The notes under the pieces were generated by a model that worked only from the letters and a program-made list of their open reading frames with translations, was not told where the DNA came from and did not search any database. Positions 1 through 49,468 of a stretch of 64,000 nt of DNA are shown here, piece by piece. The stretch is from assembly GCF_000143415.4 (NCBI RefSeq), contig NW_003314265.1, positions 324,405 to 388,404 of the forward strand. Direction: 5' to 3'. The stretch's first letter is position 1. Every line of letters starts with the position of its first letter. Source of the stretch: Selaginella moellendorffii. Its lineage: Eukaryota; Plantae; Lycopodiophyta. The translations under genes were made by a program, and so were the position numbers.

Positions 1-805
1 GATGGATGTACTGATCTCTCTCTGTCAGCTGCAAGCGATGTATCCGAAACGGATGACATGTTCATCCTCATGGCTCCGCAAAATGCCGTCGGAAATTGCA
101 TCATAGAGGTGAAAGTCGTGTGTTGATTATCTCCTTGTTTGTTCATTTCAAAGAGAGTTTTCTATTGTTACAGGATTTACAAGCAATGGTGCAAGCAGCC
201 GGAGACAGACCAGTTATTCTCGTCAATCCGCAGCTCAAGGTGACGAACTCAAGTTAGAACATTATGGAAACTAAAACTCACAAGTAATCGTTTTCTTTTG
301 TGCTTGCAGGACGTTCCAGGCGCCGGAGGAGTGATGCAGGTAAACTATAGCTTGGAATGTATAAGAAAGTAAGTTCCGTTGTCTTTGATTTTCCTAGGTG
401 ATTGGGAGAGAGCAAAGGATGGAGTTTTCAGACTCTTTCTTCGTTTGCTACTCTTTCAGGCTTCTCTACAGAGCTGGAACGTTCTATCCAATCATGGGAG
501 CGCTCAGGTGAGCGAGAGAGCAAGCTCGAATTCCTCCATTGAAAAAAAATTGTTTGATCTTGCAGGATGAAGTATCCTGGCCCCTACGAAGTCCACAAGC
601 GAATCGACACAGGCTACAGCAGTGAGACATACATCCAGGAAGCAACATTCCCAGGCCGCCCCACCCCGACAGAGCTGCAAGACGTCTTTGCCGGGCGATC
701 GAAGTAAGTTTTCGTTGCTCGTGACTTCTTCCTCACAAGGAATGCTGGTTGTGATCCAGAGAGGCAAGCAAAACCAAAAGCATCTGGTCCTTCTTCGGAA
801 TCTAA
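1..805 (+). CDS. AMK5: Chloroplast adenylate kinase 5-like, C-terminal DUF1995 domain (5' part lies outside the window; multi-exon)
   Basis: Spliced exons read DDMFILMAPQNAVGNCIIE/DLQAMVQAAGDRPVILVNPQLK/DVPGAGGVMQ...YPIMGALR/MKYPGPYEVHKR...RPTPTEL...KSIWSFFGI*, matching the plant AMK5 C-terminus. GT-AG introns at 109-173, 240-310, 340-397 and 508-565. Confidence 0.85.
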
Positions 806-1116
806 CAAGAGCAAGCGTTTCACTGAGAGAGAGAGAGAGTGAGGACGAAGATAAGAAACAAAGCACTTGCTTAATTCCAAGTACCTATCATATTTCTTCC
901 ACTCGTGTCATCCCAAAACGGGGGTGTGGCGGCGCTCTGGAGAATTACTACCGCAAAAAACACGAAGGAAAGAAAGCTTGCTCCTCGTGAGAAACTTGCG
1001 AAGAGAAACTAGAAAATATGCGTACCCGAAGAAAACAACGAATGAATGCCTTGCAGAAGCAATTGGAGGAAGCTCCAGATTTTCAAAACATTAGCAAAAT
1101 TAGACATGTTTACCAG

Positions 1117-3975
1117 CTACCAGGAGACAACCATGGCGTGGCTGCGGTCTTCGTTGGCAGGGACATGCTCTCGAGGAGCAGCTTCAAAGTCAGTAATGGT
1201 CTGCCCATAAAAGCTCGCGTCAGTGTTGTATCTCAAGCGCTTACCGAGCAGCGGACTCATTCCCGGGGTCACGAGTCCTCCGGGCTTGTTGGCCGCTGAC
1301 AGAAACGGAGATCTCAGCGGCGACAACACGGGACTCTTGGCGGGCGTCGTCGGTCGTTGTCTGAAGCCTGGAGTTTCTGGTATTGTGCTGGTGAGGGGCA
1401 TGCTCGAAGGGAGCGTTGGAAGCTGCCGAAAGCTGAATTCCTCTACGCGCGAGGTTGCTTCTGCCGCCTGTGATGGATCAAAGTCCATGTTGTCGAGCCG
1501 GCCGTCCTCCGTAGCGTTCATTAGCTGCTCACGCTCCACTTCCGGGAGAATCTCCAGCGATTTTTCCTGCACAACACAACGCATATTAGAGAGTCAGGAA
1601 CAGAAGTACGACGTACCATCAGTTTTGTTCGCTGCTCACATATCCTTTGCACCACGTCTGTGCTCATGTTCTCCATTATATATTGCCGCTCAAGGCTGAG
1701 CAAGCGCCTATGGACTGCATAGGCTTCTGAGAAACGGCACCGCTGGAAGAAGAAAAAAGCAAAAGAAGTTAGGAAACTCAACAGCTGCATAAAAACGTAC
1801 CTGAAGATAGAAAGCGGCCAGAAGACTTCCAGAGGACGATGATGGATCCTCCATCGCCTGCTCGAGAAGACATTTCCTCAGAACTTTCTCCTCGTCCAGC
1901 TTCCAAGGGAGCTCCAACACCTTTACCATGCAGTTCTTCCTTATGCAGATAAAGCATAACTCCCCTAACAAAACGTCCAATTCCTGTATCCAGTCCCTGG
2001 CAACTACATCTTCGTCTTTCTGCTGCTTGATGTTAGTTCGGATAGCCTTGACATGTGATTGTTGGTAGAGGTAAGCTTCACTTAGCATGCTGCATTCAAG
2101 CAACACTCTGACAACCGTCACCGCCTCGGACAGTGGTAGCGGTGTCAATATTTCCTCGCGTGGCCTAAACCGACCAGTTGATTGTAGAACCGGCAAGGCT
2201 GCATCAGGCCTTCCTCTCTCCAGCAAAACGAGAGAAACTTTTGGATGTAGACTCGGACTAACAATCTCTGGGATCCAGCGACAGGCCTCCTGAAATAAGT
2301 GCATCAATACAAGTATTGTTAACCGCTGCCAAGACCTTACCTGTAATGCCTCATCACTTTTGTTGTCAAGAAGGTAGAAAACGAAGGACTCCAGCATTGA
2401 CTGTCTTGGTATCGAGAAGGTCATGACGTAATCTTCGATGACATGTCTCCATTGAAGCTCGGGACACGTCCAGTGCCGATCAAACAAGTAATAGAGAAAC
2501 TGGCTGTGTTAAGGACAACAGAGAAAACGTAATAAAACAATTGCAGAAGGATACGATTGCCTTTTTGGCGAAGAAGAGATCAGAGCTTCCTTCCAGAAAA
2601 AGAGCGTCAACCGCTGCACGAGTACTTTCTGGAGGATAGTCACTGTCAGGTGCCTGATACGTAGCGACGTTTCCATGCTTCAATGATCCGAGATCAAGCA
2701 TCAAGTTGCTCGAATCGCCGTCGTCCTTTCCAAGACCGACGCTCAAAGCGTCTTCGATGAAGAGTGCGCCCGCAGGTTTTGGTCCCAGCCGTCCAGTGTT
2801 GGCCATGTACTCTGGCCATACTCTATCGTTTGCAGCCCATTTTCGTTCTTGAAAGGCAACCTTCCAGTGAGCAATGCTCGTAAAGCAGCTCGGAACATTA
2901 TCAAGGAACTTTTGCCGTATGCACCATGTCATCAGATCCAAATGCTGGAACAAAGCTTCCAGCAATTAGTAAAACACCAGTAGAGAATATCAGCTCGTAC
3001 CTGGATCACTATCCTAACGCTTTCTAAAAGCTGCTGCAACTCCACTAGAGATGCCGAACTAGCAGTAAGTGGTGCCTCAAGTGCATCCAGTACGTAGCAC
3101 AACCCCTGTAGTCTCTTCCCATGCCTGTCTAAAGCATCGGCTTTGCTTTGTGTTGGCTTGGAATTATCTGAAACGATGACAAGTGAGCTAGTGAGCAGAA
3201 AAGGAGGAAAGAAAACAGTTACATATATCGCGTAGCTTTCTCACTGTCGTGAGGAACGTTCTCTTGCACCACTCCTTCACAACAGATCCATCAAGAAGCA
3301 TAGAGATGACAGGATCACTTGAAATCGCAGCTTCGTCCATGCAAACGTCGGTCACATCTGGCCACTTGTCAAGGAAGAACAAACAAAACGAATCGAAAAA
3401 ACAGCACGTCGAAAAAGGATACAGTGACAAACCAAGGATGCCATGCTGTTCTCCACCGCGATGTCAAAGAAGGAGCAAAGTCTCCAGGCATCCAGCGTCC
3501 AGTAAGGCCCGTCTTCTTCTTTCTCTTGAAACTCTTCCTCCTGGAAGAAAGGGAGGAGCCCAGCATCCACGCATTCGTCGTAGAGGCGGAGCTTGAGGAC
3601 CTCCCCACTTCTCGGAATTGGCATCCGGCAGATCGGGCAAATGTCGCAGCGGTGGCAGCATTCCAGGCACAGGCACGCGTGGCCGCAAGACGTGAGGAGA
3701 TGCTGCACGGTTCTCCCACAGCTCCTCAAATCCCTGGTAGCCCTGCATTTCTCCACCTTGGCCTCGCTACACAGATCCCAGGGCTCCAGCCCCGCCAGCC
3801 GCTCCAGCACAGCCTGCACAACCCACAATCTCCATCACCTCCGGCCACATTCCCTCGCAAAATCTCCCGAAATTTGCCCGCAAGAACACACACAGCACAC
3901 CTGTTTCCGAGAATCGCCGCCGCCCCGCGACGAGGAAGAATCGCCATTGCCGTAGCGCGTGGGCGCGTCCTCCAT
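1117..3975 (-). CDS. HOS1: RING E3 ubiquitin ligase HOS1 (ELYS-like domain); 3' end uncertain
   Basis: Motifs EAKVEKCRATRDLRSCGR..LTSCGHACLCLECCHRCDICPICR, LFIEDAL and AKKAIFLYYLFDRHW. First exon MEDAPTRYG...RKQ splices in frame to AVLERL. Confidence 0.92.
2500..2554 (-). other. U12-type (minor spliceosome) GT-AG intron in HOS1
   Basis: 5' site GTATCCTT and branch site TCCTTAAC 8 nt before the exon. Splicing joins AKKAI to FLYYLFDRHW in frame. Confidence 0.85.
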
Positions 3976-3981
3976 CACCAA

Positions 3982-3990
3982 AAACCCTAG
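3982..3990. promoter_or_regulatory. Telo-box (AAACCCTA) just upstream of the HOS1 ATG; the motif also occurs near 29770, 29803, 57400 and 62215
   Basis: AAACCCTA/TAGGGTTT recurs immediately 5' of many genes in this window. Confidence 0.6.
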
Positions 3991-4157
3991 ACTCTAAAAT
4001 TTCAACCAATCCCAACCGTTGGTATCCGACGGCTGGATACAACACAGTGCCAAACCTATAGACCTTCCGTACACCCCCGTACGGACTTGAGATCTTCACA
4101 TTATCCGTTAGAGCAGTTCCTGTAGAAGAGATAACAAACATCTCTCCACTCTAGCGA

Positions 4158-7100
4158 TCAAAAATCCAGCAAAGAGAACTCGGGCGATTGATCGCCAAAA
4201 TCGCCATCGTCGCTCTCTTCATCATACGAGCTGCGATCGCCATTGTCGTCCGGCTCGGATAGAAACTCGAAGATCCCATTGGCCGAGATATCAGCATCCT
4301 CGTCGCTCAGATCCAGCTCCAGTTGCTCCTCGTCCTCCTCGCCATCTTCCGACGATCCGGGTGAGAGCAGCCGGGGGCCATCGTCGTCATCGTCGTCCTC
4401 CTCGTCATCGTCTCCATCCATCTCGTTCTCCTCGTCCGTGTCCATGCCATCGTCCGGGTCGGAATCATCGTCCGTGGGTCTCCTCCTTCCAACCTCGTAG
4501 AACTTCACGTACGAGTCCATCACCTGGTTGGGCTCCATTGCCACCACCCCGATCACCGACTCGCTGTTCTCGGTGGCCAAGTCGAGCACGCAGCGGTCCA
4601 CCTGCGTCGTGGCGATGTCCGAGTAGTCCACCGCGTCGATGGTCCGGAACGCCGAGAAGAGAGGGTGCCGGGCTCGCTTCGAGTTCAAGGCCATACCCAC
4701 CTCGTCCGTGTTGCGCCGGAGAGTCGCGTAGATCACGTCCCCTCGCGGGTTGAACGTAAGAACTGTCTGGTCCAGCGACGGCACGCTTCTCAGCAGCTTG
4801 AAAGTTCGAAGGTCCCATACTTCCGAGTTGATGATAACCTGGAAAAGATCCAAAACCAAACCTTTAGACTCAGCACGAGCTAGAAACAACACTAAAGGCT
4901 CACCTCGTTTCCAGCCGGATGGAAGCCACCACCGCAGTAGTCCGTGAACTGATCGAACCGGTGGACGGCTCCAGGGATGCGGTGATCCCACAGGACACCA
5001 TTCCAGAGAACCATGATGTCGGAAGGACTGAAGTGGATCTGAGACGGAAACTGGCCGCGGACTGGAGTCGTGATTGAAGCGTCCGTGAGTGTGTGCGATA
5101 ATGTGTAGTTATTTACATCATAGAGCATCACTTCCTTGGCGTGTTGCCCCGATCTCGTGACACCGATCATCGTCCCAGCGTGATTAAACCGAGCCGACTT
5201 GCAGTTGTCAAAGGTGTGAAGCGGGCCTGGTGTCAAGCCTGCCGAGTTCCAAAGCTTGACATCCGAGGTTGACGACGAAAGGAGGAGCTGTCCCGAGCCG
5301 GAGTCACCTGATATCGAATGCGGGGCCGATTGTAGGCTTGTTACTGGGGTCAAGTGGCAGCCGTGTCTCTCGAGCGTGGTTCCGTTGTTTGCATCAAACA
5401 GCACGATGTTTCCGCCGTGACAACCGGCAGCAAAACATCCGGTTTGGCCCAGCACAAACGTTCCGCACGTAAGTATCCTTGCGTCCTCGTCTCGGCTCAC
5501 ACGGACTAGCCGGAACCTGCTGTAGATGAAGTGCCTGTTGTGCCGTCGCCCGTGCATGCCACCGTAAGGTGGGTTGATCTCTCTCGTGCCGAGCCTTGTA
5601 GAAGTGTTATACGAGGCGTAGAGAGTTCTGCTGGCCTCCGGGCAGACGTGAGGATGAAGTAACGAGAGCGGCGGCAACGTGGTTATTGGAGCCGGACACT
5701 GGCGGTGTTGGTGCTTGAGGTACTGCACCACGAGGCTGTCTAGCGTTGCTCGCTCGTTCGCGTTGTGCTCCACGAGTAGATTTGGATGCGAGCCGTGGAC
5801 GGCCGGAGTCGTAAAGCTCGAGGGCTCTGGAAAATCGTCGAGCTTCTCCGAGGCCTTGGCTCCCAAATCTTGAAGAGCTGGAGTTGTCGTTAAGGGAGTC
5901 TCACAAGTGTTGTCGGTGGTCTTAAACCGCACCTGTGGAGTAGTAAGCATTGCCGGAGCAGCGCCGTTAGTGGAGAGGTATGGCCTCTTGTTTGGCGATG
6001 CATCCTTATCGCTTAACTTGCGTTTGAGTGAGCTCTTTGGCAGCACCGGCGTTCTTGACGTGCTGTCCTCGGTAGTATTCAATCTAGTCCCCGTTGCATG
6101 TGTGTCCTGTCCCTCTAATGTAACCCCTTCTTTACCAGCACCTGTTTTTCTAGGAGTCAAGGCTAGCCGCCTCCTCGAACAATCAAAATTTTGTCTGTCG
6201 TCATCGCTGCCCTGCTTGTTGGCCAGAAATGTACCACCGTTTAACCGACCGCTTGGCCATTGCATCTCCACCTTTTGATCAGTGAGAACTTCTTGGGCAG
6301 TGGATGAACTTGGAAGTGATGCCGCTGGCAACAAGGGATTCAAAGGCGCCAGTTGAGCTTCTTTGAGCAGCGTTAAAGCTGTGCTTGTGAACCCAGAAGC
6401 TAGAAGATGCTCGTGGATAAGCTGTAAAAGCTCCCTGTGAACACGAGATATACAGTCAACTGAAATTGGAAATAAGAAGGTGATCACTTACCTGGAGTGA
6501 TAATTTATCGGTGTTGCCGCAGCAATAGCAGCCCTCTCTATTCGTCGCAATGTAGGCGCCGCTGCCTCACTTGCGACAGTGCTAGCTCGACCTGCATTTG
6601 TCACAATCTGCCGTCACCACGAAGTGAGTACAAGCACAACGGAGTTGGAATCTAACTTACCCCTATCAAGTCCAAGGCGGCCTGACTTAATTCAGTTTGC
6701 CATCTGTCTTGTCCTGCACGATTTGCTTGTGATCCATCCCTCAGAAGTTCTGACAAAAGTTTCCCAACCTGCAGCGAATAGAGGTGGTAAGAAACAAAGA
6801 ACTATAGAGAACTTACTTGTAACTTCGTGAGGATTTGAGCAATGGCTTCGTCCCGGGCCAGTCCCAGTAGCACCCGACAGGCAAGGGCACGAATGTGAGC
6901 GGAGGGTGGCAAAACTGTTCGCGGATACAGCAAGTGCAAAAGAACTTTGATGCCGTTATTAGCTCGCACTGCTTCACGAGCAAACCGATAGCCTTGCTCC
7001 ATAGATGCTGCTAGTCCAGGCCCTCCAGATCCTGGTCCTAACGATATCCTCGTGTCACCAACTAGAGGTGAAGACAATGAGAGAGATGTCCCGGCTCCGT

Positions 7101-36319: not shown

Positions 36320-39286
36320 ATGGTGAATTCTCCCTTCCCGCGGCAGCCCAAATCGATGGGTTTCGTCCAGGGGAATTTGTTCTTCGATCGCGAGGCTCTT
36401 GGGGAGGTGGTGGTGCTTCCGGTGGGCGATGGATTCCTGGTTTGCTGGAACCCGGACAAGGGGGGATTTTTAAGCGTGGAGCATCGCAGCGAGCCAGGTA
36501 GAAGCCTTTGGTCCACAGCTCCTGGGTTTTCTTTCGTCACCGCGGCTCTGGGAGTGGAAACGGTGGAGGAGTTTCGGGGATCGTTTGGGATCCATGACGA
36601 GATCAAGCTAATTTGTAAGCACCAAAGTGTTGACAAGATCCTCTCTTTGGCGGGCTCAAGCGCTCAAAGTCAGCTAGCGGATGATCACGTTTCGTTGTCA
36701 AACCAAAAAGATGGAGATGGGACCCCGTTGTCCGTGAGTGGGGGCTCGTCAGTGGTGATCACTGGGACTTTGTTCTCGGCAGAAACAGCGTTAAATTCTC
36801 CGCGGCCTTTCTTTCGTAGGAAAGACTGCTCCAACAGTGTTGCTGTCTGCTACACGCTTTGCTTCACAGAGAAGAGGCCTCACCACCTTGGTTTTACGAT
36901 CAAGCTTGATAAGCCGTTCTGGATCGCGCCACCAAAACAAGCGGAGAACTATTATCACGAGCTCCAAGCCGATCTTAAAAGTGATTTTGACGTGCTAGAG
37001 AGGATTTGGTCGGAAGGATCAATTTTTAGACGGAGAAGCTATGGCTCGCTAAGAGTTCGACCGGTTGAGCAAACCAGTATTGACGAAGTTCCGGATTTTA
37101 ACAGGGTCCAGCTGACGTACATCTCTCACAGAAACGAACGATTCTTTGGATTTGGCGAGCAGTTCTCTTGCTTAGATCTGAAAGGACGGAGAGTGCCGAT
37201 CCTCGTTCAGGAGCAAGGCGTCGGAAGAGGTGACCAGCCTATTACCGCTGCAGCAAACATTCTATCTTACAGGTATGTTTCAAAAGTTTCAACTTGTTTC
37301 TGGAATTTCTCTTTCTAGATCTGGAGGAAGCTGGCACACAACTTATGCACCATCGCCATATTACATGACCTCCGATATGCGGTGTTTGTTCCTTGAAAAC
37401 TACGAGTACTCCGTCTTTGATCTGCGTCGTCACGATCGAGTTCAAATACAAGTAAGTTCTGTTTCTGTCTCTCCTTTTCTGAATTGAAGATGAGAGTGAT
37501 TCAGGTGCATTCGGGAACGATGGAAGGCCGGGTCTTACATGGACAGACACCCGCAGAGCTGCTTATGCGCTATACTGAAAGCATTGGAAGAATGCGAGAG
37601 CTTCCGGACTGGATTCATCAAGGGGCTGTCATTGGCATGCAAGGTGGAACGAACGCTGTGAATAAAATACATGCTGAACTTAAGAAGCACGACGTTCCTA
37701 TAGCTGCCTTCTGGTTGCAAGTTCGTATTTCTTTTCTCCATTTTTTTTTCACCTCCGACTTCTGTTAAAGATTTCGTTTTCTTTGTGCACAGGACTGGGT
37801 TGGCCAAAGGAAAACAAGCATAGGATGGCAACTTTGGTGGAACTGGGAAGCAGACACGGATCATTACCAAGGATGGGGGGAGCTTGTGCAAGAGCTCAAA
37901 TCTCAGGGCATTCGAACAATGACGTACTGCAATCCTCTCCTCGCTTGTGTAAGTCTCTTTTCAGAGTTTCCTTTACGATGCCAATGTCTTACCTTGAATG
38001 TAAAGGTTGAGAGCAAGGAAGCGAAACGAAGAAATATGTTGCAAGAAGCTTTAGCTGAGGGTTTCTTGGTGCGTAAGCCTGGTGGAGGCGTCTACATGAT
38101 TAAGAACACGAGTTTTGACGCAGCGGTCATTGATCTTACAAATCCCAAAGCTCGTTCCTGGCTGAAAGAGATACTGAGAGACATGATCAGTACTGGAGTT
38201 TCGGGATGGATGGCGGACTTTGGCGAAGCCTTACCTTTCGACTCGGTCATTCACTCAGGTAGTTTTTGTGGATGCTTTACTGGATGGTGTCTGACAAGCC
38301 TGTATACAACAGACGAGAATCCAGCGCTCCTTCACAATCGATTTCCCGAGCTGTGGGCTCAGCTCAACAGGGAGGTCGTCGAAGAATGGGAGCAAGAGCA
38401 CAAGTTACAAAACGGTGACATCGACAAACTTGTCTTTTTCGTGCGAGCGGGGTTTATGAGAAGTCCGAAGTGGTCGACCCTGTTCTGGGAAGGAGATCAA
38501 ATGGTAAGCTGGCAGAGGAACGATGGCATAAAAAGCGCTGTTGTTGGACTGCTGAGCAGTGGCATCTCCGGATACTCTCTGAATCACAGTGATATTGGCG
38601 GCTACACAACGGTGAATGTTCCATTTCTAAAGTACGTGCGAAGTGAGGAGCTTCTCATGCGCTGGATGGAGCTCAACGCCTTCTCTGTGATTTTCAGAAC
38701 GCACGAGGTACGAGAAAGAGGTTCTTAGAAATGGTTTGCAAAACTTTCCTTTTCCAGGGAAACGATCCTGGAGCGAACTCTCAGTTTTACACGAATGCGC
38801 GAACTTTCCAACACTTTGCTAGGTGCGCAAGGATTTTCAAAGCGTGGAATTTTTACCGCAAGGAACTTGTCAAGGTGCGTATAACTCCTTGCATAGATTC
38901 GCGCTTACGCTTGGAAGGAATGATTTTTTTTTGCAATCTAGGAAGCGGCAAGTCGAGGTATGCCCGTCGTGAGGCACCTCTTCCTTCACTATCCACAGGA
39001 CGAGTTCGTGCAAAGAATCACTTACGAGCAATTTCTAGTTGGCTCGGAGCTTCTCGTCGTTCCAGTGCTCAACAGAGGCAAACGAAAGGTCCGTGCTTAT
39101 TTTCCAGCGGGAGACGTGTGGGTGCACGTCTGGACGAACAGGAACTACGGCTCCGCGGAGCAATCCTCGAGTGCCTGGATCGATGCACCGTTTGGACTTC
39201 CAGCCGTGTTCGTCAAAGCCGGATCGACAGTTGGATCAACCTTTATGTCCAACTTGGCCTCTCTCGATGGTGTCCCGGCCTCGTGA
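36320..39286 (+). CDS. Glycoside hydrolase family 31, YihQ/sulfoquinovosidase-like
   Basis: FFGFGEQFS.LDLKGRRVP, EQGVGRG, GMQGG, WLQ/DW...LWWNW, nucleophile GWMADFGE, acid/base WEGDQ, HSDIGGYT and FRTHE/GN. Confidence 0.9.
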
Positions 39287-39364
39287 CATTGGGAATATGC
39301 TTAACCGGTCGATTACACCGTGGCGCGGAAAGGAACTGTTTCAAACAGTTTTGGCTACAGGGAG

Positions 39365-39946
39365 ATGGAGGAGCGGCTAGACGCGGCGGTGGCGCTCGAG
39401 GATGACGAAGAGAAACTTTGGGAGGAAGAAGAAGGAGAGGAAGACCCGGAGGATGATCCCGGACGAGCACTGGAAGCGGTTGAGGAATTGCTGCGCGAGA
39501 GAGAGGCGTTCATCCGGAAAGTGAGAGCGAACGAGATGAGCTTGGAGGACCTTTGCAAGCACGTCACTGAGGTTGGTTTCTAGTTTTCGCGGTTGCTCTC
39601 TTTAGTTTTTCTCACTAGATCTCGAATTGCTCAGGCAAAATCCAGGGCCGAGAAGGAGAGAGACGAGCTTACGTCTCAGATCGACAAGCTCAAGTTTAAG
39701 ATGGCATCGCAGTCTGTGTTGATCGATCAGCTCAACGAACAGGTAGCAAAAGAAAACCCCTCTCTCGTTCTCTCGTTTTACTTTTTTTCTTGGAGTTTTA
39801 TCGAATCAAAAACTGGAATTTCACAGGTTGGAACTGCGAGGAACAACGTAAAAAACCAGCGCGAGCAGCTGGAGATATATCTCCAAAAGGAGAGGCAAGA
39901 GGAGCTCCAAGAGAACGCTTTGGTGGACGGTGGCGATGGTCGCTAG
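39365..39946 (+). CDS. Small acidic coiled-coil hypothetical protein (three exons)
   Basis: MEERLDAAVALEDDEE...KHVTE/AKSRAEKERDELTSQIDKLK...NEQ/VGTARNNVKNQREQLE...; consistent phase-0 GT-AG introns. Confidence 0.6.
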
Positions 39947-40216
39947 AGAGAATCTTACGGTGGCCGGGGTTTCACGCTCGTATAGGTCGGGACGGCCTAT
40001 ATGAATGGACGTTGATAGGAAATGTAAAAATTTTGGTGCTCGTTTTAAATTCTTACGGCTTTGCCGCTCGCGGCGCTCATATTCTAGGGCTCTGCGTGAT
40101 CGATCGCGATGCCTCTACGAAATCGGTAAATGCAGGTGTACCGATCGATCCTCTTCCAGTTCTAGGCCGATCGCACCTGGGTTCTTGCGGTTCTGGGACG
40201 ATCGTACTTAGCCGCG

Positions 40217-43200
40217 ATGGAGCAAGGTGAATATTCTAGTGATCAGGAGGCGCCGGATGCGATTATCGGCAGAGGGAAGAGCTCCTGCGACTCGGCGCCA
40301 GGGAAATCGCAGCATGTCGAGTGGATGGATCCGAAATCCATCAGGTTCTCACAGCGGCCGGTGTTTGAAAAGAGTGTGGCTTTGCTGAGGAAAGGCGCTG
40401 GGAAGGAAGGATCTTCGCAGTGCTTTGCGCAGGTCGCGGCGGAGGGCAGCCTGGAAGGGCTGCTGGCCAAGCTGAGAGATGGCTCGGTCGGGGTGGAAGA
40501 AGTTCCACCCATTCGCGTCTTCTACCACGAGAATGCGTGGTACACCTTGGACAACCGGAGGCTTTGGGTGTTTAGGGAGCTTGGGAAGCGCATCCCCGTG
40601 GAGGTTGTCGAGGCCTCCAAGGAGTTTCTCAAGAAGCTGGAGCCAAAGTTCGCTGGGAGAGAGGTTTCTTTCCGCAATCCAGGAATGGCCGCGGAGGAGC
40701 AGACTCTTTCACGCCAAGTTCTGGCATGGTCTTTGGACAACATAAACAACGAAAGCTTGCTCGTCAATCAGGTTGGTTTTCTTCTTTTTGCTCTTGGTGA
40801 TTGGCTTCGAATGACTGTCTTGCTCTCGCCAGGTTGACAAAATCCCCTTGGAGTTCCCGGCTTTGAAAAACTATCTGAGTGTATTCCGACCTCTTCTACT
40901 TGAAGAGACCCGCGCCGCCTTGCAGCAAAGTCTTGAGATGATCAACGAGTTGCCTTGCGTTCTTGTCGAGATGGGCAAGGAAGTCCCTGTTCGGGATGGC
41001 GATGACAAGATCAGAAGGTTTAAGATGCAAGTTTCGAAAGACATACTAAAGCCGAAGGATTTGGTTCTCCTGACAACAGCAGAGCCAGACTGCCTGACGA
41101 TTCTGCGAGATAGTGGCGAGTTTTATACTCTTGGTCTTATTATCGCTGGCGACGACATGGACAGTGACGAGCTCAAAGTCGACGTATACGCTCCTATCGA
41201 CAGTTCCGAGTACGACCCCTTCCTTGAAACCAATCGACCGTGGTATGCTGTCTACTTGAGCTCCCTCGCCACTGGAATGCGAGTTTGGGAGTCTCTGAAA
41301 CGTCCTTCTCTGGCTCTAGCATCTCAATATCCTATATTTCAAGAAGTTCTTCAAGCAAACTCGGTAAGAAACTTCATGTTTCGTTTACATATCTAGTTAA
41401 GACGCGTTTTTGTTTTGCAGGGTGAACCGGAGATATATGACGTTGAAGGTATGACAAGCTCCGAGATTAGTTGCGCAAGGTGGTTTAAGCTCAACGATTC
41501 TCAAATGGAAGCTGTCTCGAGGACTGTTATCGCTCTGAAGAGGGAACAGAAGCCTTATGTCAGACTGATCCAAGGACCGCCCGGAACAGGAAAGACATCG
41601 ATGCTTATGGCTCTGATCTCTGTGCTTGCCGGCTCCAGCAAGCGCATACTTATGTCTGCTCCGACAAATGCCGCCATAACTGAGGTTGTGGTGAGGCTTT
41701 TTACGTCGATAACAAAGCAGCCCTCTCCTTTTATCGGGTGTACAAGGACCGTATGTCCTCGTGACGTCGTGTTGGTGGGCAACAAAGAAAATCTTGAAGT
41801 GGATGACAACGAGATCCTTGACGCTGTTTTCCTTCAGAGCAGAGAAGAACGATTAGCGACTGTCCTCGCTACTGCTTGCGGGTGGCAACAGAAAGTTCTT
41901 TCTGTCGTGGACTTTTTGGAGAATGCAGAAGAACGCTATAGGCAGTATAAGCAGGATAAGAAGCCCGACGAGCCTGCCGAGAGCTTCCTGGACTTCTCCA
42001 GGGAGAGAATGACGTTTCTTGGGGATCAGATGCTGAGTAGCATTGACTTAGTGTGCAACGATCTGCCGTCCACCTTTCTCAAGTCTACTGATATCCTTGG
42101 AGCCAGACACCACGTCACCGAGATCAATGCAGCCTTTGGACGATTTCGCGAAGACTCTGAAGTTCTGAACTACGTCAGTTCTACTTCAGGGGCCGCAGCA
42201 GCTCTTCTGAACCTGTTGAAGACAAACATGGATTTTGTGACGTACCCGCCTGGTAAAATTCCTACTGGTGAAGAACTTCTGCGGCACGCGTCTGTAGTCT
42301 GCTGCACGGTCTCCTCTGCAGGCACGAGAATTGTGCAGAATACCTCTCGACATTTTTATACAGCGGTTATCGATGAAGCGGGCCAGCTTGTGGAAGCAGA
42401 GACAGCAATTGTGATGGGTCTACAAAACTTGAAGCAGCTGGTATTAGTTGGGGATCACAAACAATTACCAGCGACTGTTATAAGCAAGGTAACTTTTCTT
42501 GGTCAATAGCCTCCTGGTTTCATCTGAAATTTCGCTTCTCGTGGTTTCCCAGATTGCTCAGGACTACAGCTATGGCAGAAGTCTTTTTGAGAGGCTGCAG
42601 CTCCTCGGACATCCTAGTATAATGCTCAACGTTCAGTACCGTATGCATCCTTCTATCAGTCAGTTTCCAAATTTCCAGTTCTATGAAGGTGCAATCTGCG
42701 ACGGGCCAAATGTTGTGGATGACTTCTATGGCCAGTTATCACAATCGCAGCTCTTTGGTCCTTACACATTTTTAAACGTGCACGGTGTTGAAACGAAAGA
42801 CGAAAAGCACAGCAAGAGCAATGCTGTGGAAGTACTTGTTGTGATGCACCTCCTCAAGATGCTTCACCAATCAGGTGCTCAGACTTTTTATTCTCCTGAA
42901 ACTGACTTTTGTTTCCAGGCGAAAAATTACAAGTAGGCATAATATCTCCATACGCTGCTCAGGTGAAGGCCATCAACGATCGGCTTAAGTCCTGGGACCA
43001 TGGAAGTTTAAGTATCAATTGTCGTTCTGTCGATGGATTTCAAGGACGCGAAAAAGATGTTATTATCTTGTCCACCGTTCGGTCAAATGTTGGTGGTTAC
43101 CTGGGTTTTCTCGAAGATCATCGACGATTGAACGTTGCAATAACTCGTGCAAGGTAGCTTTCGACTTGCCTATCGAGCATCTTACAGCTGAAAAGTTTTG

Positions 43201-46200
43201 TTGTAGGCACGTCCTTTGTATTGTTGGTAACGCCAACACTTTGGAATCCAGTGACGGTGTTTGGAGACAGCTTCTCAACGATGCGCGGCATAGGAAATGT
43301 TATAGAGAAGCTTCACAGGATTCTACCGTAAAGAGAACTATTCAAAGAGCTATGGCGGAAATTCATCAGCTGGAGTCTCTCGTGGATCCCCGGTCAGATT
43401 TTTTTAGCAATAACGTTTGGAAGGTAAGACTCAAGCTGTTTAGAGTCCTGTAATGCTAACAAAGAGCTGGTTGCAGGTGTTTTTCAGCAAAGAGTTCAAA
43501 GCCAGTTTCACGTCCATCTCGTCGGGATCGACAAAGTTGCATGTGCTAAATGCCATTCTCAACCTTGCCAATGGACGTCGTCCGAGACACGCGTTTACGG
43601 CCCCCGTTCCCACGAAGCGAAACTACGTTCAGTTCCATCTTACGATGGAAATGTATCTAGTTTGGACGGTTGACTTGGACGCTGATTGCACAGTTCAAGT
43701 CCTAAAGTTCTGGGATGTTCTAAAGCTTGACGGCCTTCCTAGGATTGTCAGCCGTCTTGAGAACCTGTGTGCTACATACTCGGGCCCTTATTTAAGACGA
43801 TCGAGCGAACGCCTTACGGACGGGTACATATGTCCCAACTTCTCAATATTGAAGGGACTCACACTATCTTTTTGTAGGAAGGTGGCCGTGCCTGCTAGAT
43901 GGAGCTCTGGAGCTGAAATAGAGCGGCATAAGTCCTTGAAAGAGATTGCAAGCTCTGAGGCGAACGGGGAGACCACGACTGGCGAGAACTCAAGCGTGTC
44001 AGAAAGCTTACTGTTGATGAAGTTTTATTCTCTATCAACAGGTATTGCTAGACAGCTCTTAACAGCCACCGACGGTAGCCAAATCGATCCTCCATTCGAG
44101 GTAACAGATCAAGAATCTCAAGTTGTTAAGTTCCCCTGGAGTTCCTTCGTCGTCGGAAGGTCGGGGACAGGAAAGACAACAGTTATAACCATGAAGCTGC
44201 TTAACCGAGAGCAACAGTTTCGTCTATCTCATGGGCTCGCTGAAGGTGAATCTCCGGGTCAAACTGTAGTACGTCAAGCTCTGATAACTGTCAGCTCAAA
44301 ACTATGCGCGGCAATTAAGTTTCACCTTCAAAGGACACGCAGGTAAGAGTTCAGTGCCTTTTTTGTTTGATTTAACTTTTGAAATCATAGATCTCTTCAG
44401 CGAAACAACGCTGTCAACAAAGATGACATGTATGAGAGAGAAGGCTTAATGCTGGACGAGGAAGCAGAAGAAAAGTTGTTCAGCGACATACCTGACAGTT
44501 TCGTCGACATATCCCCGCAAGCATTGCCTCTCGTCATCACGTATCGAAAGTTTTTAACCATGCTCGATGGCAGCGTTCCGAGACCTTTTATCGCCAGGAG
44601 GGACATGGAGACAGCGCAAGGAACTTTTATTAGAGTTGAAGATTGCGACGACAGCGATCGCTTCGATACAAATGACGACATTGATATCTCTTATGAAGCT
44701 CCGAAGACATCTCAACGGATTCAGCGCAGAAAAGAGGTGGATTTTGATTGCTTTGCCGCAAGCTATTGGCCGCATTTGAACTCTAGCTTCACCAAAATGT
44801 TCGATGCCTCAGTCGTCTTCACCGAGATCATGTCATCGATTAAAGGAAGGCCTGAATCTCTACGAAGCCATAAAGGACGGCTATCTCGAAATGACTACGT
44901 TTATATGTCTTCTTATACTTTGGACCAGAGCCAACGAGAAAATATATATGAGCTTTTTCTACAATACGAGAAGCTAAAGTCACAGCGAGACGAGTATGAT
45001 ATATTGGATCACGTCAGATATCTATATCGACAGATCGAGGGTGGGGAACCGTTAGGACCGAAGTTTCAGTTTATATACGTCGACGAGGTCCAAGACCTCA
45101 CTCTGGCTCAGATCAGTCTTCTCAAGTTCGTTTCTGACAACGTTGCAGAAGGATTTGTTTTTGCTGGAGACACGGCACAAACAATCGCTAAAGGCGTAAA
45201 CTTTCGCTTCGAGGATATCAGGAGTTTGTTTTACAAGGAGTTTTTGGAAATTGACGACAGGAGGCAGATCACGAAAGATGGGAAGTTGCGGAAGCAGGCA
45301 CTATGTAATATCCATCAGCTGACGCAGAATTTTAGAACTCACAAAGGGATTGTCGACCTCGCGGACAGCATTATGCAGTTGCTGTTGTTCTTCTTTCCGG
45401 AAACAGTTGACAAGTTGGAACCGGAGCGGAGTTTGATATGTGGTGAGAAGCCCGTTGTTGTGAAGTCCGATGAGAATTACAACCTCATCACCTGCCTATT
45501 TGATCGCAGTGGAAGGTTTGGACGGGAGTCCGACTTTGGAGCCGAGCAGGTGATTCTAGTGCGAGATGGTGAATCCAAGCAGAAACTTTTAAAGCGACTA
45601 CAAAGCTTGGTGCTTACTGTAGAAGAATGCAAAGGTCTCAATTGATAGAAGTTGAGCGATTTAAATAACAGTCTCTTCAGGATGTTCTACTGTACAACTT
45701 TTTTGCGCAGTCGAACTTCGGCTCTAAGTGGAGAACTCTGTACACCTATCTCGACGAGACAAGTCTTGTGAACTGCTGCTGTCAGGGATATCCCAAGTTC
45801 GAGAAAAGACTTCACAACATTCTGTGTAACGAACTGAAGCAGCTATATGTGGCTATTACAAGGTCCAAGCAGCGTCTTTGGATATATGACGAGGACTTTA
45901 CTTTCCAGCAGCCCATGCTAGACTACTGGATCACGAAAAACTTGGTTCAGTCGAGAAGTCTGGACGAATCCCTCGTTTCTTCTTTCCATAGAATCAGCAC
46001 CCGGGAAGAGTGGCTACAACGAGGACGCCAGGTTAGTTTCCAATGCTCCACAAGTCTCTTCATAAACTTACGTGTTCTTATTGACAGATGTTCAACGACC
46101 GCCAGTATGATATGGCTGTCTTGTGCTACCAACGAGCTCATGATTCGTATAGAGCTCAGTGGGCACAAGCTGCTCTGCACCAGCAAAATGGGGAGAAGAA

Positions 46201-49200
46201 TCTCGTCTGGAATCCCACCATAGCGACTCAGCAGCTACAAGACGCAGTGAACCTTTATGAGAGAATTGCGAAGTTCGAAGCTGCGGCAAGATGTTTGACG
46301 AAGATCAAAAACTTTAAGCAAGCTGGTAATTAATTCATGTAATCGTGATACGTAGCGATCGTGAATTACTAACGTTTCTGTCATTTCCAGGTGTATTGTA
46401 CAGGGACAAGTGCAATCCGTCGCGCTGGGAAAACGCTGCTCAATGTTTTGAACAAGCAAAGATTTATGATGAAGCAGCAGAAGCATATGCCATGGTAGAA
46501 GATTTTCAGAGTTGCTTATCCGCATGCCTGGCTGGAAAGCTGTTTGAGAAGGGGCTGAACTTTATCCGGGACCGAGAACAGCAAGATGCTTCATTCCTCA
46601 GCAATAAGTACGTGGTGAATCTCTTGAAGACCTCGGCGGAGCACTATCACAGAAAGAAGGACGTTGACAGGATGATGAAATTTGTTCACGCGTTTCCGGG
46701 CATTTCCATGAAGCGGGACTTTTTGAAGAGGCGTGACTATCTGGAGCAGCTTATGCAAGTGGAGTTCTTCTACATGAACTACGAAGAAGCTTCTCAGGTA
46801 GCCGAAGCGAAAGGAGATCTTATAGCCGCTGCAAAGTTCCTAGAACTAGCTGGACATCGAGCCGAAGGAGCTAGAAAAATCATCAAACACATGCAGCTGA
46901 AACTTCTATGGGCGAACAACAACCTGGGGTGGCCTTTGAGGCCTTTGGAAGATGAAAAGCTCGTCACTGAGGCTCACAGAATGGCAAAAGGGGATCCTCG
47001 AGCAGAAATCCAGCTTCGAGTCCTAAGAGATGACGACGACCTCTCGCTGTCAGATGTTTTCGAGAACTGGAAGCTGGCGAAAGACGACCCGACTATAAAC
47101 ATCATAGTGCTGCGTCAGCTCTTGGAGAAAGGTCTAGAGTTGGCTAAAGGTTCGACTTCGCTCGGGCTTCTTACTCTACAGGTTTTGGACAGGCCGTTGA
47201 GAACAGCTAGTGACATGACCAACACTCTGCAGTTTGTGGTCGCTGTTTGGAACACTTGGTTCCAGAAGATAAGCTCGCTGCTGAAGGCACTGGCAAAGAT
47301 CGAGAAAATTATTCCGCAAGGCGACGCACTTCTGGATTCTTGCTTGGAATTTATGGGCGTTACTCGGCACCATCTTCCCGGGCTGTGCATAGTGGAGGAC
47401 AGCATGGTTGACTGGCTGAAACGGGGTGGAGACTGGACCGTCGGCAGTGGAAAGGCACAGCTGAAAACGGAAAAGTTTCTGTCTCTAGCAACAGATTTTT
47501 GGCGGGGTCAGCTAGAGTCGACGAGCGCAATCTTCTGTGAAGTGCTGGAAAGCCACGCAGGCAATGCTGGTGGAGCCGAGAGCTGCCTGTCAGTGTTGAA
47601 GATTATGGACGTGGTCAGTAGCTTGGGGAAGTCCGAAACTCACGAAAGAAGACTTCGAAGTCTCAGGATGGAGCTTTTCCGGTGTTTATTCGTACGCCGA
47701 GGGAATACTCCCGTTAGCTTACGGGACCATCCCAAAGTTACTCCTCACCTGGACGCGCTTGCCAGAGACATTACAGCAGCGAGTGATTCGGTCGAAGAAA
47801 CAGTTATGCTACAGATTCTGGGACCTTATTTGAGGAATGGTCCCGGGCAGGATTTTATTGCCAACGAGTACTGCTACCACTTTGCGATGCCGATAAGCCA
47901 GTGTGCTCAAGGGCTGCACGACATCTTTAGCATGGAAGGCTTCCAGCATTATATCACTCCGTCGATGTTCATCTACATGCTGGAGCGAATACTTGTTTCT
48001 AGCACTGCGTGCTTATCACACATCGTGGAGGCAACGCTCCCGGAAAGCCTGGCTATGGAGTTTATGACGGGGTCTACGCAGGAAATTCTGTACACGCGGA
48101 TGTTGAGGATGGGCTGCTCCGTGGATAAATTTTGCAAGAGTGTTGGGACAAACTCTCTGGAAGTCATTCAGAAGATTTGCAGTTCTCTGCTACTCGGATA
48201 CCGCCTGGACAAGTGGTTGCTCGATATCCCAAAGTCAGAGGTAGTCTTTCGGATTATTCGAGTGCTCTTAACCATTTTCATGGAGTTTGAGAACCAGGCA
48301 GTGAACAGCCACATATTCCGAGATCTGAGGAGCTTGGTGACCCGGCAGTCTTCTGCGCTGGACCATCTTCTTCCGAGCTTGAGGCAGGGGCTGCAGTGCC
48401 TCTTCGAGACAGGTGCAAACTACAATCACTTCCGGATACTCTTCTGCCGGTTCATGATTGAATGCGGCGATCAGTTTCTGCTTCTGAGGCGGAGAGACAA
48501 ATTCAGGCATGGATTTAAGTCTCGGTTCCAGACTTATGTCAATGTGGAGCCGGAGCCGTGGAAGTTCAGCCTGGCATCACTGCAGCAGCCGGATGATTTG
48601 ATGCTGCAAACTGTGGATGCTGAGGAGGAGGAAGTTGATGAAACAACGGAGCTGAAACCTTCCGAGGTCGAGCTGACATTCGAGTGTCCGGAGCCAGAGA
48701 TGACGGCTCCCGCAAAAGAAGAAGCATTGTCTCCATGGTACCTGAAAGTTGGCGATTCGAAGCTCGGGTTTTTCGTGGTCTGGAGGCTGCTGAAAAAGCT
48801 GCAAGTTGCCAGAGAGAACTTGGTCCAGGATGACGAGTATGTCCGGGAAGCCAAAAACGCGTTTAGCACTATGGCTTGTAAAGACGACGGCTACGTTTCG
48901 TCATTCATCTCCGAAGTGTGTCCTCTAAAGGTCTGCGTACTTTCCTTTCTCTTTTTCCCTCCGGTTCTTTGTAACACTCTCCTGGCAGGCGGACTTGGTG
49001 AGTTTCGTGCTGGACATGGCTTCCGCGATTGAGATTCTGAAAGGCCGAACCTTTGCCGGTCAGGATGGGCAACTCAAGGCCGATCGAGACGACCTCGTGG
49101 AGAAGATGAACGACTTCAAGTGCGAATGCGAGGCTTTGTTGGAGCTTATGGATCCTAGGTGAGTGAAGTGTTTGCTTTGCTTGTATGGATGATCTATAAC

Positions 49201-49468
49201 TTTACAAACTCTCAGGCATGCCGACCATCAGAAGCAGGACTTGGATTGGCTACTTCTATCTGTCACAAATCCAGCAACAGAGAAACTAAGTTATGGCAGA
49301 TCCAAATTCAACCATCGCCTTAAAGACGTGCTCGGTGATGCTCTCCAGCGCAAAGAAACTATCTCCAATGAGCCAGCAAAGCCTTGCTCGTCCGCTACTA
49401 AGCCCGCGCCTAAGAAATCAAACAAGAAGAAAAAGTCCGGGAAGAAAGGGGGAAGAAAGAAGCAGTGA
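40217..49468 (+). CDS. TRANK1-like double SF1 helicase: ParB/Srx-like domain + Upf1/Sen1-like helicase + RelE-like segment + UvrD-like helicase + TPR; apparent lesion near 45640
   Basis: Helicase 1: [53 protein letters not shown]. Helicase 2: [42 protein letters not shown]. Followed by TPR-like helices and a basic C-terminal tail. Confidence 0.9.

Follow-up and report, generated by a model that had tools for sequence, protein, structure and literature searches.

Introduction

A helicase gene of the lycophyte Selaginella moellendorffii raises the question of whether a toxin-type domain stands at the head of a plant protein, whether that domain is made and what it could do there. The gene, SELMODRAFT_438696, lies within a stretch of 64,000 nucleotides (nt) of contig NW_003314265.1 (positions 324,405 to 388,404), referred to below as the window. 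When its protein product of 2806 amino acids (aa), EFJ34295.1, was mapped to the window by tblastn, the whole gene was found to extend over 40217-49465 on the + strand, which is also the strand of all features described here. A first-pass annotation, made from the letters of the window, had proposed that exon 1 (40217-40771) places a toxin-type domain of the ParB/sulfiredoxin (Srx) fold in front of a double helicase, where it would act as the effector of an immune sensor. The anatomy of exon 1 and its family assignment could be settled with high confidence: the exon encodes an intact Tox-ParBL1 domain. The fusion of this domain to the helicase is real and ancient: besides the lycophyte, a moss, liverworts, a zygnematophyte alga and one bacterium have it.

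Exon 1 encodes a Tox-ParBL1 domain

Exon 1 is an open frame of 185 codons that ends at a GT donor at 40772, and its translation is 100% identical to residues 1-185 of EFJ34295.1. As read from the sequence, its start codon, ATG 40217, is the first in-frame ATG after the stop codon TAG at 40163-40165. The exon-1 peptides on which the proposal had been built were all present, namely the IRFSQ-region peptide from 40325, PPIRV at 40505-40519 and LDNRRL at 40547-40564, the frame is open from ATG 40217 to the donor, and the domain is fused in frame to the helicase, as had been claimed. The ParBL1 domain, about 110 aa in size, corresponds to residues 37-156 (40325-40684) and was assigned by family alignments, an AlphaFold2 (AF2) model, fold searches and toxin-tip clusters of the ESM Atlas.

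In the main text of Zhang et al. 2012, Tox-ParBL1 is defined as 'Predicted ParB fold; [ST], [NT][RT][RT]', where [NT][RT][RT] is mostly N-R-R; according to the same text, the conserved N-terminal Ser/Thr is absent from classical ParB, and the N-R-R is equivalent to DGHHR of Tox-ParB (PMC3482391). The Selaginella counterpart of the N-terminal Ser/Thr is S45 in the FSQ motif (40346-40354). Ser or Thr occupies this position in all 14 rows of the alignment, and the F, S and Q of FSQ are nearly invariant in the family. The PPIRV strand (40505-40519, model residues 70-75), in which P, I and R are nearly invariant, leads into the hairpin of the nucleotide motif. LDNRRL (40547-40564) contains N113-R114-R115, the [NT][RT][RT] motif; its N, R, R and L are invariant in the 14-row alignment, and N113-R114-R115 is nearly invariant across 123 sequences. 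The nearly invariant family signature (IRF-S/T-Q, L..G, PPIRV, LDNRRL, F, K, G) is intact in Selaginella, which also retains every residue that varies little or not at all among the 123 homologues (F, L, G, P, I, D-N-R-R-L, F, G). The domain was assigned to Tox-ParBL1 because of the conserved S/T, the NRR motif, the ParB fold and the homologues at toxin tips.

The plant domain differs from the bacterial one by an insert of 25-30 residues between the FSQ strand and the first helix. In Selaginella, it spans residues 50-77 (40364-40447). The alignment placed this insert in the double-helicase plant forms, and an S-Y-A-E-A-like motif was present in most of the double-helicase orthologues. It was absent from the bacterial members, from a bacterial helicase fusion described below and from the single-helicase paralogues of liverworts.

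A phmmer search against 1.84 billion representatives gave 350 matches at E<=1e-3, 16 of which were at E<=1e-10; judged by these sequence scores, the family resemblance is far beyond chance. Curated models did not recover the family: residues 37-156 had no match in Pfam, NCBIfam or PADLOC, a Pfam scan of the domain and 12 family members returned nothing even at E<=10, and a sequence search of the Protein Data Bank (PDB) with the single sequence and two profiles gave no match. The exception was a weak Noc match (E 0.02) for the bacterial homologue that is fused to a helicase, which spanned the DNRR motif. A comparison of the family alignment with P1 ParB by hhalign yielded no match (probability 0.7%), which is uninformative, P1 ParB being divergent and the template a single sequence. 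The archetype of Tox-ParBL1 given in the main text of Zhang et al. is NGK_2271 of Neisseria gonorrhoeae, a MafB toxin, which was linked to ParB by HHpred at 93% (PMC3482391). The Selaginella domain was linked to the type of this archetype only by a shape match to a cluster of MafB class 3 (template modelling (TM) score 0.64, 103 residues).

Predicted fold of the domain

The AF2 model obtained from the single sequence had a predicted local distance difference test score (pLDDT) of 35 and was not used. The model based on the 123-row alignment of homologues reached a pLDDT of 77, with the core above 90 and the insert modelled at low confidence (pLDDT<50 at model residues 24-46). All the top 50 Foldseek matches of this model in PDB were proteins of the ParB/Srx fold. 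The best of them was 6ky4, Arabidopsis sulfiredoxin (E 4.9e-4), and the matches included Arabidopsis and human sulfiredoxin, ParB, Noc, KorB, SbnI, a serine kinase, PadC and Atu1540. An independent VIA-align search of 48,161 chains yielded 13 matches at Z>=2, the top 10 of which were all ParB/Srx proteins (Z 7.6 for 6ky4 and 7.3 for 2hwj).

The individual scores were middling (Z 7.6, TM 0.44-0.61). The result is nevertheless persuasive because the match lists contained essentially nothing but ParB/Srx proteins. As modelled, the domain is of the ParB/Srx fold, and the fold named in the first-pass annotation was thus supported by the AF2 model, Foldseek and VIA-align alike. In the model, D112-N113-R114-R115 is located where the second hairpin strand turns into a helix, apparently the place occupied by GxxR in ParB and by the phosphate motif in sulfiredoxin. 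Shape matches in the ESM Atlas comprised PT-HINT, PT-VENN, polymorphic toxin MafB class 3 and RHS clusters at TM 0.63-0.68, and a ParB/RepB/Spo0J cluster was also among them.

Relatives of the domain at toxin tips and in eukaryotes

The family is used as a tip of bacterial polymorphic toxins, as had been proposed. The domain was found C-terminally in RHS proteins and in RHS proteins with PT-HINT; a Streptomyces RHS protein of 1328 aa, for example, has an Rhs-associated core followed by ParBL1 at the tip, and the Atlas clusters agree with this picture. In a stretch (3145-4309) from a metagenome-assembled genome of Thermoanaerobaculia, an open reading frame (ORF) of 244 aa that ends in ParBL1 lies 3' of an RHS/YD-shell protein and a DUF4288 gene. 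This arrangement looks like an orphan toxin cassette placed behind a complete RHS toxin and the gene that would provide immunity to it.

Standalone occurrence in eukaryotes, which had also been predicted, was seen in Mya arenaria and in mollusc clusters, as standalone or tandem forms with two or three stretches per bivalve protein. Mollusc clusters dominated the nearest neighbours in the ESM Atlas. A protein of Nezara viridula has eight ParBL1-like stretches in 1157 aa, a tandem array of a toxin-type domain in an animal. In Klebsormidium nitens, the protein GAQ79822.1 (555 aa) carries the domain C-terminally, at residues 466-544, and has no Pfam domain; this architecture is unlike that of the helicase fusion. 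Other eukaryotic fusions of the domain are with WW and ubiquitin domains. Tox-ParBL1 was already listed in Viridiplantae and other eukaryotes in the main text of the 2012 survey (PMC3482391). Among the nameable members of the 16 representatives at E<=1e-10, there was no seed plant, and this suggests, on sequence grounds, that the family is absent from seed plants.

Transcription and translation start of exon 1

A complementary DNA (cDNA) contig of run X1 covers 40444-40771 and then continues with 11 letters identical to those with which exon 2 of the other allele begins. It therefore crosses intron 1 (40772-40832), which is 61 nt long and bounded by GT and AG; the AG acceptor ends at 40832, and exon 2 begins at 40833 (VDKIPLEF...). 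The proposed splicing of 40217-40771 to 40833 was thus supported by a contig that starts at 40444. Run X1 was recognised as cDNA by the spliced joints in a neighbouring gene. Raw RNA reads were present at 40461-40762. They were few, and expression was very low, with a depth of about 1 or less versus 10-30 for the upstream gene. The clearest transcript evidence came from the allelic copy, because the reads carried variants of the other haplotype: the X1 contig and one X22 read had the synonymous variants V101 GTG (40519), Q162 CAA (40702) and T for C at 40844. One X23 read matched the allele of the window.

It is very unlikely that the domain is not made in this plant, in which case translation would start downstream at ATG 40685 and the upstream frame would be an annotation carry-over or a decaying remnant. 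This explanation would agree with the RefSeq model located on this scaffold, XP_024524470.1, which starts at M157 and omits the domain, with the lack of RNA reads within 40159-40309 and their near absence before 40444, and with the end of the upstream gene's transcript about 144 bp before ATG 40217. Against it, 40444-40771 is covered by raw reads and by the cDNA contig, which is spliced to exon 2, and this coverage starts far upstream of 40685. Furthermore, the frame is open through the domain in both haplotypes, in which its core is identical and the family-invariant residues are intact. The RefSeq model from the other scaffold, XP_024528141.1, and both JGI models start at 40217 (MEQGEY) and include the domain, so that the two RefSeq models of this gene are in conflict, and the present finding flags this. 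In the orthologues, this exon is kept and so is the W of WMDP, whereas the M that follows it, M157, is conserved in none of them. Taken together, the domain is likely translated in vivo.

ATG 40685 had been regarded as a mark of the addition of the domain to an older gene. This idea was not borne out, since M157 is not conserved and the fusion is shared by bryophytes, an alga and a bacterium. ATG 40685 as an ancestral start codon was rejected for the same lack of conservation among the orthologues.

The helicase fusion in plants and one bacterium

The module consisting of ParBL1, DUF6469 and an Upf1-like helicase was also found in Ceratodon purpureus (2920 aa), Calypogeia fissa (2620 aa, together with a single-helicase paralogue of 1155 aa), Riccia fluitans (1047 aa) and Closterium. 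The genomic loci L011-L014 and L016 kept the same exon order; at two plant-like loci, a ParBL1 exon was followed by DUF6469, AAA_11, AAA_12 and UvrD exons. Several exon-1 ORFs of other assemblies ended at the same intron position, after the VLxWS...LxVN junction. Word-indexed searches for further fused orthologues returned only Ceratodon and the queries themselves. In Selaginella, the junction segment comprises M157-Q185 (40685-40771) and contains the conserved VLxWS motif that opens the N-terminal region of the helicase. Apart from M157, this segment was kept directly after ParBL1 in plant and bacterial homologues.

An intronless bacterial ORF of 1519 aa in a JGI metagenome (Ga0606640_0005158, 748-5307) has the order ParBL1, junction, DUF6469 and Upf1-like helicase. 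It begins with a Pro-rich N-terminus of about 380 aa, its ParBL1 is complete and has no plant insert, and it adjoins a gene for OmpA and the type IVB (Dot/Icm) secretion genes for DotI/IcmL and DotH/IcmK. The bacterial protein could be aligned with that of Selaginella over ParBL1, over the junction and DUF6469 region (2e-17) and over the helicase (6e-62). Because of this alignment over all the parts, the unit of ParBL1, DUF6469 and Upf1-like helicase appears to have arisen once and so to be common to streptophytes and a bacterium with type IVB secretion. The bacterial ORF may encode a eukaryote-like effector; alternatively, it may be where the plant module came from. In a maximum-likelihood tree of 128 domain sequences (115 columns), there was no supported clade with plant rows or the bacterial copy, and neither an origin nor a direction of transfer was read from it.

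Identity of the Selaginella protein to those of moss and liverwort was 47-49% for the ParBL1 core, 31-36% for the DUF6469 region and 26% for the C-terminus. Both helicase cores were 44-49% identical to those of the moss, and the first core was 44% identical to that of the liverwort. Judged by these identities, the ParBL1 core has been as strongly constrained as the helicase motors. The two haplotypes of Selaginella differed at 8 codons of exon 1, which led to 5 amino-acid changes, all in the N-terminal tail or the plant insert; 2 of the 5 fell in the insert (40364-40447), and the ParBL1 core was 100% identical. Swapping of N-terminal domains among paralogues, for which a survey had been suggested, was not seen: conservation was uniform, and the same head was present on single- and double-helicase forms.

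In one single-helicase paralogue, KAL2629325.1 of Riccia fluitans (domain at residues 20-100), the motifs were partly degenerate (FSV, PRMSV and KGNRR), and the head may be losing its activity in this lineage, as far as the motifs indicate. The loss of motif parts in this paralogue could be taken to favour the explanation that the Selaginella domain, too, is translated and catalytically dead, capping the N-terminus of the helicase in a structural or protein-binding role only, and the same can be said of the fusion of the domain to interaction modules such as WW and ubiquitin in other eukaryotes. However, Selaginella and all the double-helicase orthologues retain every family-defining residue, including the S/T and D-N-R-R. 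A dead cap is highly improbable, and it is the least probable of the explanations considered. It is somewhat more probable than not that catalytic or nucleoside triphosphate (NTP)-binding activity was retained.

Possible function of the domain

Proteins that have a toxin-type N-terminal domain followed by NTPases and a C-terminal helical region represent a layout of many conflict proteins. The order of parts in the Selaginella protein fits a putative N-terminal effector, a central NTPase and a C-terminal repeat sensor, with tetratricopeptide repeats (TPR) at the C-terminus remaining below threshold. According to the mechanism proposed here, the protein would be a machine for nucleic-acid surveillance, with the head as its enzymatic output. 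Once the helicases and the C-terminal repeats had engaged a protein cue or a nucleic acid that is foreign or aberrant, a conformational change would free the N-terminal ParBL1 head. The head would bind and turn over NTP at the site formed by S45 and N113-R114-R115 and, once freed, would hydrolyse nucleotide or attack the bound nucleic acid locally. Biochemical precedents exist: NTP binding and hydrolysis, or phosphate transfer, are established for domains of the ParB/Srx fold, and ToxB, a classical Tox-ParB, is an ATPase toxin that needs the arginine of GxxR and kills plant cells too (10.64898/2026.05.05.722872). The effector reading was slightly preferred because the nearest relatives are toxin tips and because of the order of head, NTPases and helical C-terminus. 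Even so, the full mechanism is put forward tentatively, and an effector role of the domain in defence or genome conflict, which is proposed from the architecture, should be considered possible but doubtful.

Several observations weigh against this role, in addition to the RefSeq model that omits the domain, the scarcity of reads at the 5' end and the degenerate Riccia paralogue described above. No measured activity was found in the literature for any Tox-ParBL1. No immunity-like domain or partner was found, and PADLOC gave no match. TPR was not established in the C-terminal region, since the moss orthologue yielded only sub-threshold SNAP/TPR Pfam scores. The strong and uniform conservation of the domain over more than 400 million years, without swapping, looks more like a core function than like an effector in an arms race, so far as conservation can tell. 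Finally, domains of the ParB superfamily in known defence systems serve as sensors no less frequently than as toxins, and those of the DUF262 type in GmrSD, SspE and Menshen NsnA are sensors or NTP switches and not toxins (PMC12065111). A complex prediction for the ParBL1 head and residues 157-920 gave a score of 0.00, which counts neither for nor against docking.

Another explanation takes the ParBL1 head for a switch or sensor gated by NTP, in the manner of the ParB CTP clamp or of DUF262, rather than for a toxin. It would bind nucleotide, and perhaps nucleic acid too, and control the loading, dimerisation or activity of the helicase, and the output would belong to the helicase or to a recruited partner. 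Several defence systems, and chromosome partition too, have ParB-superfamily domains that are described as sensors and NTPase switches (PMC12065111; 10.64898/2026.05.05.722872). The conserved junction welds the domain to the DUF6469-helicase part in both plants and the bacterium, and the domain evolves as slowly as the motors, which suits an integrated regulatory part. On the other hand, sequence and shape alike place it nearest to toxin tips and to small proteins that stand alone, and not to DUF262 or the DNA-binding ParBs, and no DNA-binding domain of the ParB kind is attached to it. The complex prediction for head and helicase, with its score of 0.00, gave no verdict on this point either. 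A switch of this kind is about as probable as the effector role, and somewhat unlikely taken by itself.

The head could also be a housekeeping enzyme module with no conflict role, for example a phosphotransferase or NTPase like sulfiredoxin, SerK or SbnI that acts on an RNA or DNA end or on a protein within the ordinary RNA or DNA metabolism of the helicase. Absorption of toxin-derived domains into core eukaryotic systems is suggested in the main text of Zhang et al. (PMC3482391), the structural neighbours of the domain include sulfiredoxin, a serine kinase and SbnI, and its long-term conservation in a single architecture would be expected of such a module. Its expression, however, was very low beside a well-expressed neighbour, and the family is scarce, with only the 16 representatives at E<=1e-10 in 1.84 billion, none of them a nameable seed plant. 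A core function would hardly be dispensable in seed plants, from which the family is apparently absent. This explanation was judged to be quite unlikely, though not far below the effector and switch readings.

The surveillance-effector mechanism can be extended to the history of the module. In the extended form, ParBL1-DUF6469-SF1B helicase would be an ancient nucleic-acid surveillance weapon of streptophytes that was lost in seed plants, and the bacterial copy would have arisen by horizontal transfer, possibly as a translocated mimic. The helicase would sense foreign or aberrant RNA or DNA and unleash a toxin-derived head that consumes NTP or attacks nucleic acid, making the protein a counterpart of prokaryotic helicase-effector defence. 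The extended form as a whole is unlikely.

Structure of the gene and its surroundings

Downstream of exon 1, the N-terminal accessory region of the helicase, including DUF6469, occupies 40833-41486 and has one short internal intron; it was assigned by PF20073 and the tblastn map. PF20073 was below threshold in the Selaginella protein (21.9 bits) and above it in the orthologues of Calypogeia and Ceratodon. The Upf1-like core of superfamily 1B (SF1B), composed of AAA_11 and AAA_12, spans 41487-43220 with introns. It was assigned by Pfam and the tblastn map, with both Pfam models above threshold (PF13086, 3.6e-41, 142 bits; PF13087, 4.5e-62, 209 bits), and the joint 43150>43193 within it was seen in a cDNA contig. 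The second helicase, UvrD-like and of superfamily 1A (SF1A), extends from the P-loop to UvrD_C over 44146-45887, also with introns, and was assigned in the same way (PF00580, 8.7e-11; UvrD_C and UvrD_C_2 near threshold). The C-terminal region of about 1100 aa (45888-49465, tblastn map) had no Pfam match above threshold and probably consists of helical repeats. Thus, of the helicase and TPR modules named in the first-pass annotation, the two helicases were confirmed, whereas for TPR there were only sub-threshold Pfam scores.

The + strand neighbour upstream, at 38800-40073, has three short introns, codes for a small coiled-coil protein and is well expressed. From the end of its cDNA, near 40073, the distance to ATG 40217 of the helicase gene is only about 144 bp. 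In between, at 40109, another ATG opens a short frame in phase with the helicase, which the TAG at 40163 closes.

Comparison with known systems

What is already known is the domain family and, from the main text of the 2012 survey, its presence in Viridiplantae; no paper on a ParBL1-helicase fusion was found, and none is named in that main text (PMC3482391). The statement that the fusion had not been described in plants therefore held for the helicase fusion, which appears to be undescribed, and did not hold for the family, which Zhang et al. had listed there. With the present finding, Tox-ParBL1, for which there is no Pfam model, gains a defined and conserved eukaryotic partner, and the unit of ParBL1, DUF6469 and Upf1-like helicase, with an apparent single origin, is shared by plants and a bacterium. 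Should the head prove to be an active effector, the protein would represent, in non-seed plants, a type of innate-immunity or genome-defence protein not yet studied in plants, in which a helicase sensor is combined with an output derived from a bacterial toxin. The occurrence of orthologues in transformable bryophytes (Ceratodon and liverworts) makes this reading testable.

In its overall build, the protein appears to resemble the large eukaryotic SF1 surveillance helicases, such as ZNFX1, which is Upf1-like, and TRANK1, which has UvrD plus repeats: an Upf1-like SF1B core is followed by another motor, UvrD-like, and by a C-terminus that is long and helical. Neither ZNFX1 nor TRANK1 is known to have a ParB-like head.

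The head itself is closest to Tox-ParBL1 as described in the main text of Zhang et al., with which it shares the N-terminal Ser/Thr, [NT]RR, the predicted ParB fold and homologues at toxin tips (RHS, PT-HINT, VENN and MafB) (PMC3482391). It differs in its N-terminal place within a protein of the host and in its attachment to a DUF6469/Upf1-like helicase, with no secretion or pre-toxin module and no immunity gene, and, in the double-helicase plant forms, in the insert of 25-30 aa. With ToxB, an ATPase toxin of the ParB-CTPase fold at the C-terminus of CdiA, it shares the ParB/Srx fold, which ToxB uses as a toxin (10.64898/2026.05.05.722872). ToxB, however, is recognised by PF02195 and has GNHR, whereas the Selaginella domain is not recognised by this model and has DNRR and an additional conserved Ser.

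Sulfiredoxin (6ky4) is a compact single-domain protein of the ParB/Srx fold, similar in size to the Selaginella domain and likewise with its nucleotide-phosphate motif at a strand-to-helix turn. The identity is only 16-17%, and the catalytic cysteine of FGGCHR is absent from the Selaginella domain; sulfiredoxin and Tox-ParBL1 are regarded in the main text of Zhang et al. as separate eukaryotic acquisitions (PMC3482391). The DUF262 domains of GmrSD, SspE, DndB and Menshen NsnA resemble the Selaginella head in that an N-terminal ParB-superfamily domain is placed on a multidomain protein that acts on nucleic acids (PMC12065111). They differ from it in belonging to another family, in being prokaryotic, in having DGxQR and QRxxxW motifs and in their partners, which are nucleases or ABC ATPases and not SF1 helicases. 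These domains provide a precedent for an NTP-dependent regulatory role of the ParB superfamily in immunity (PMC12065111).

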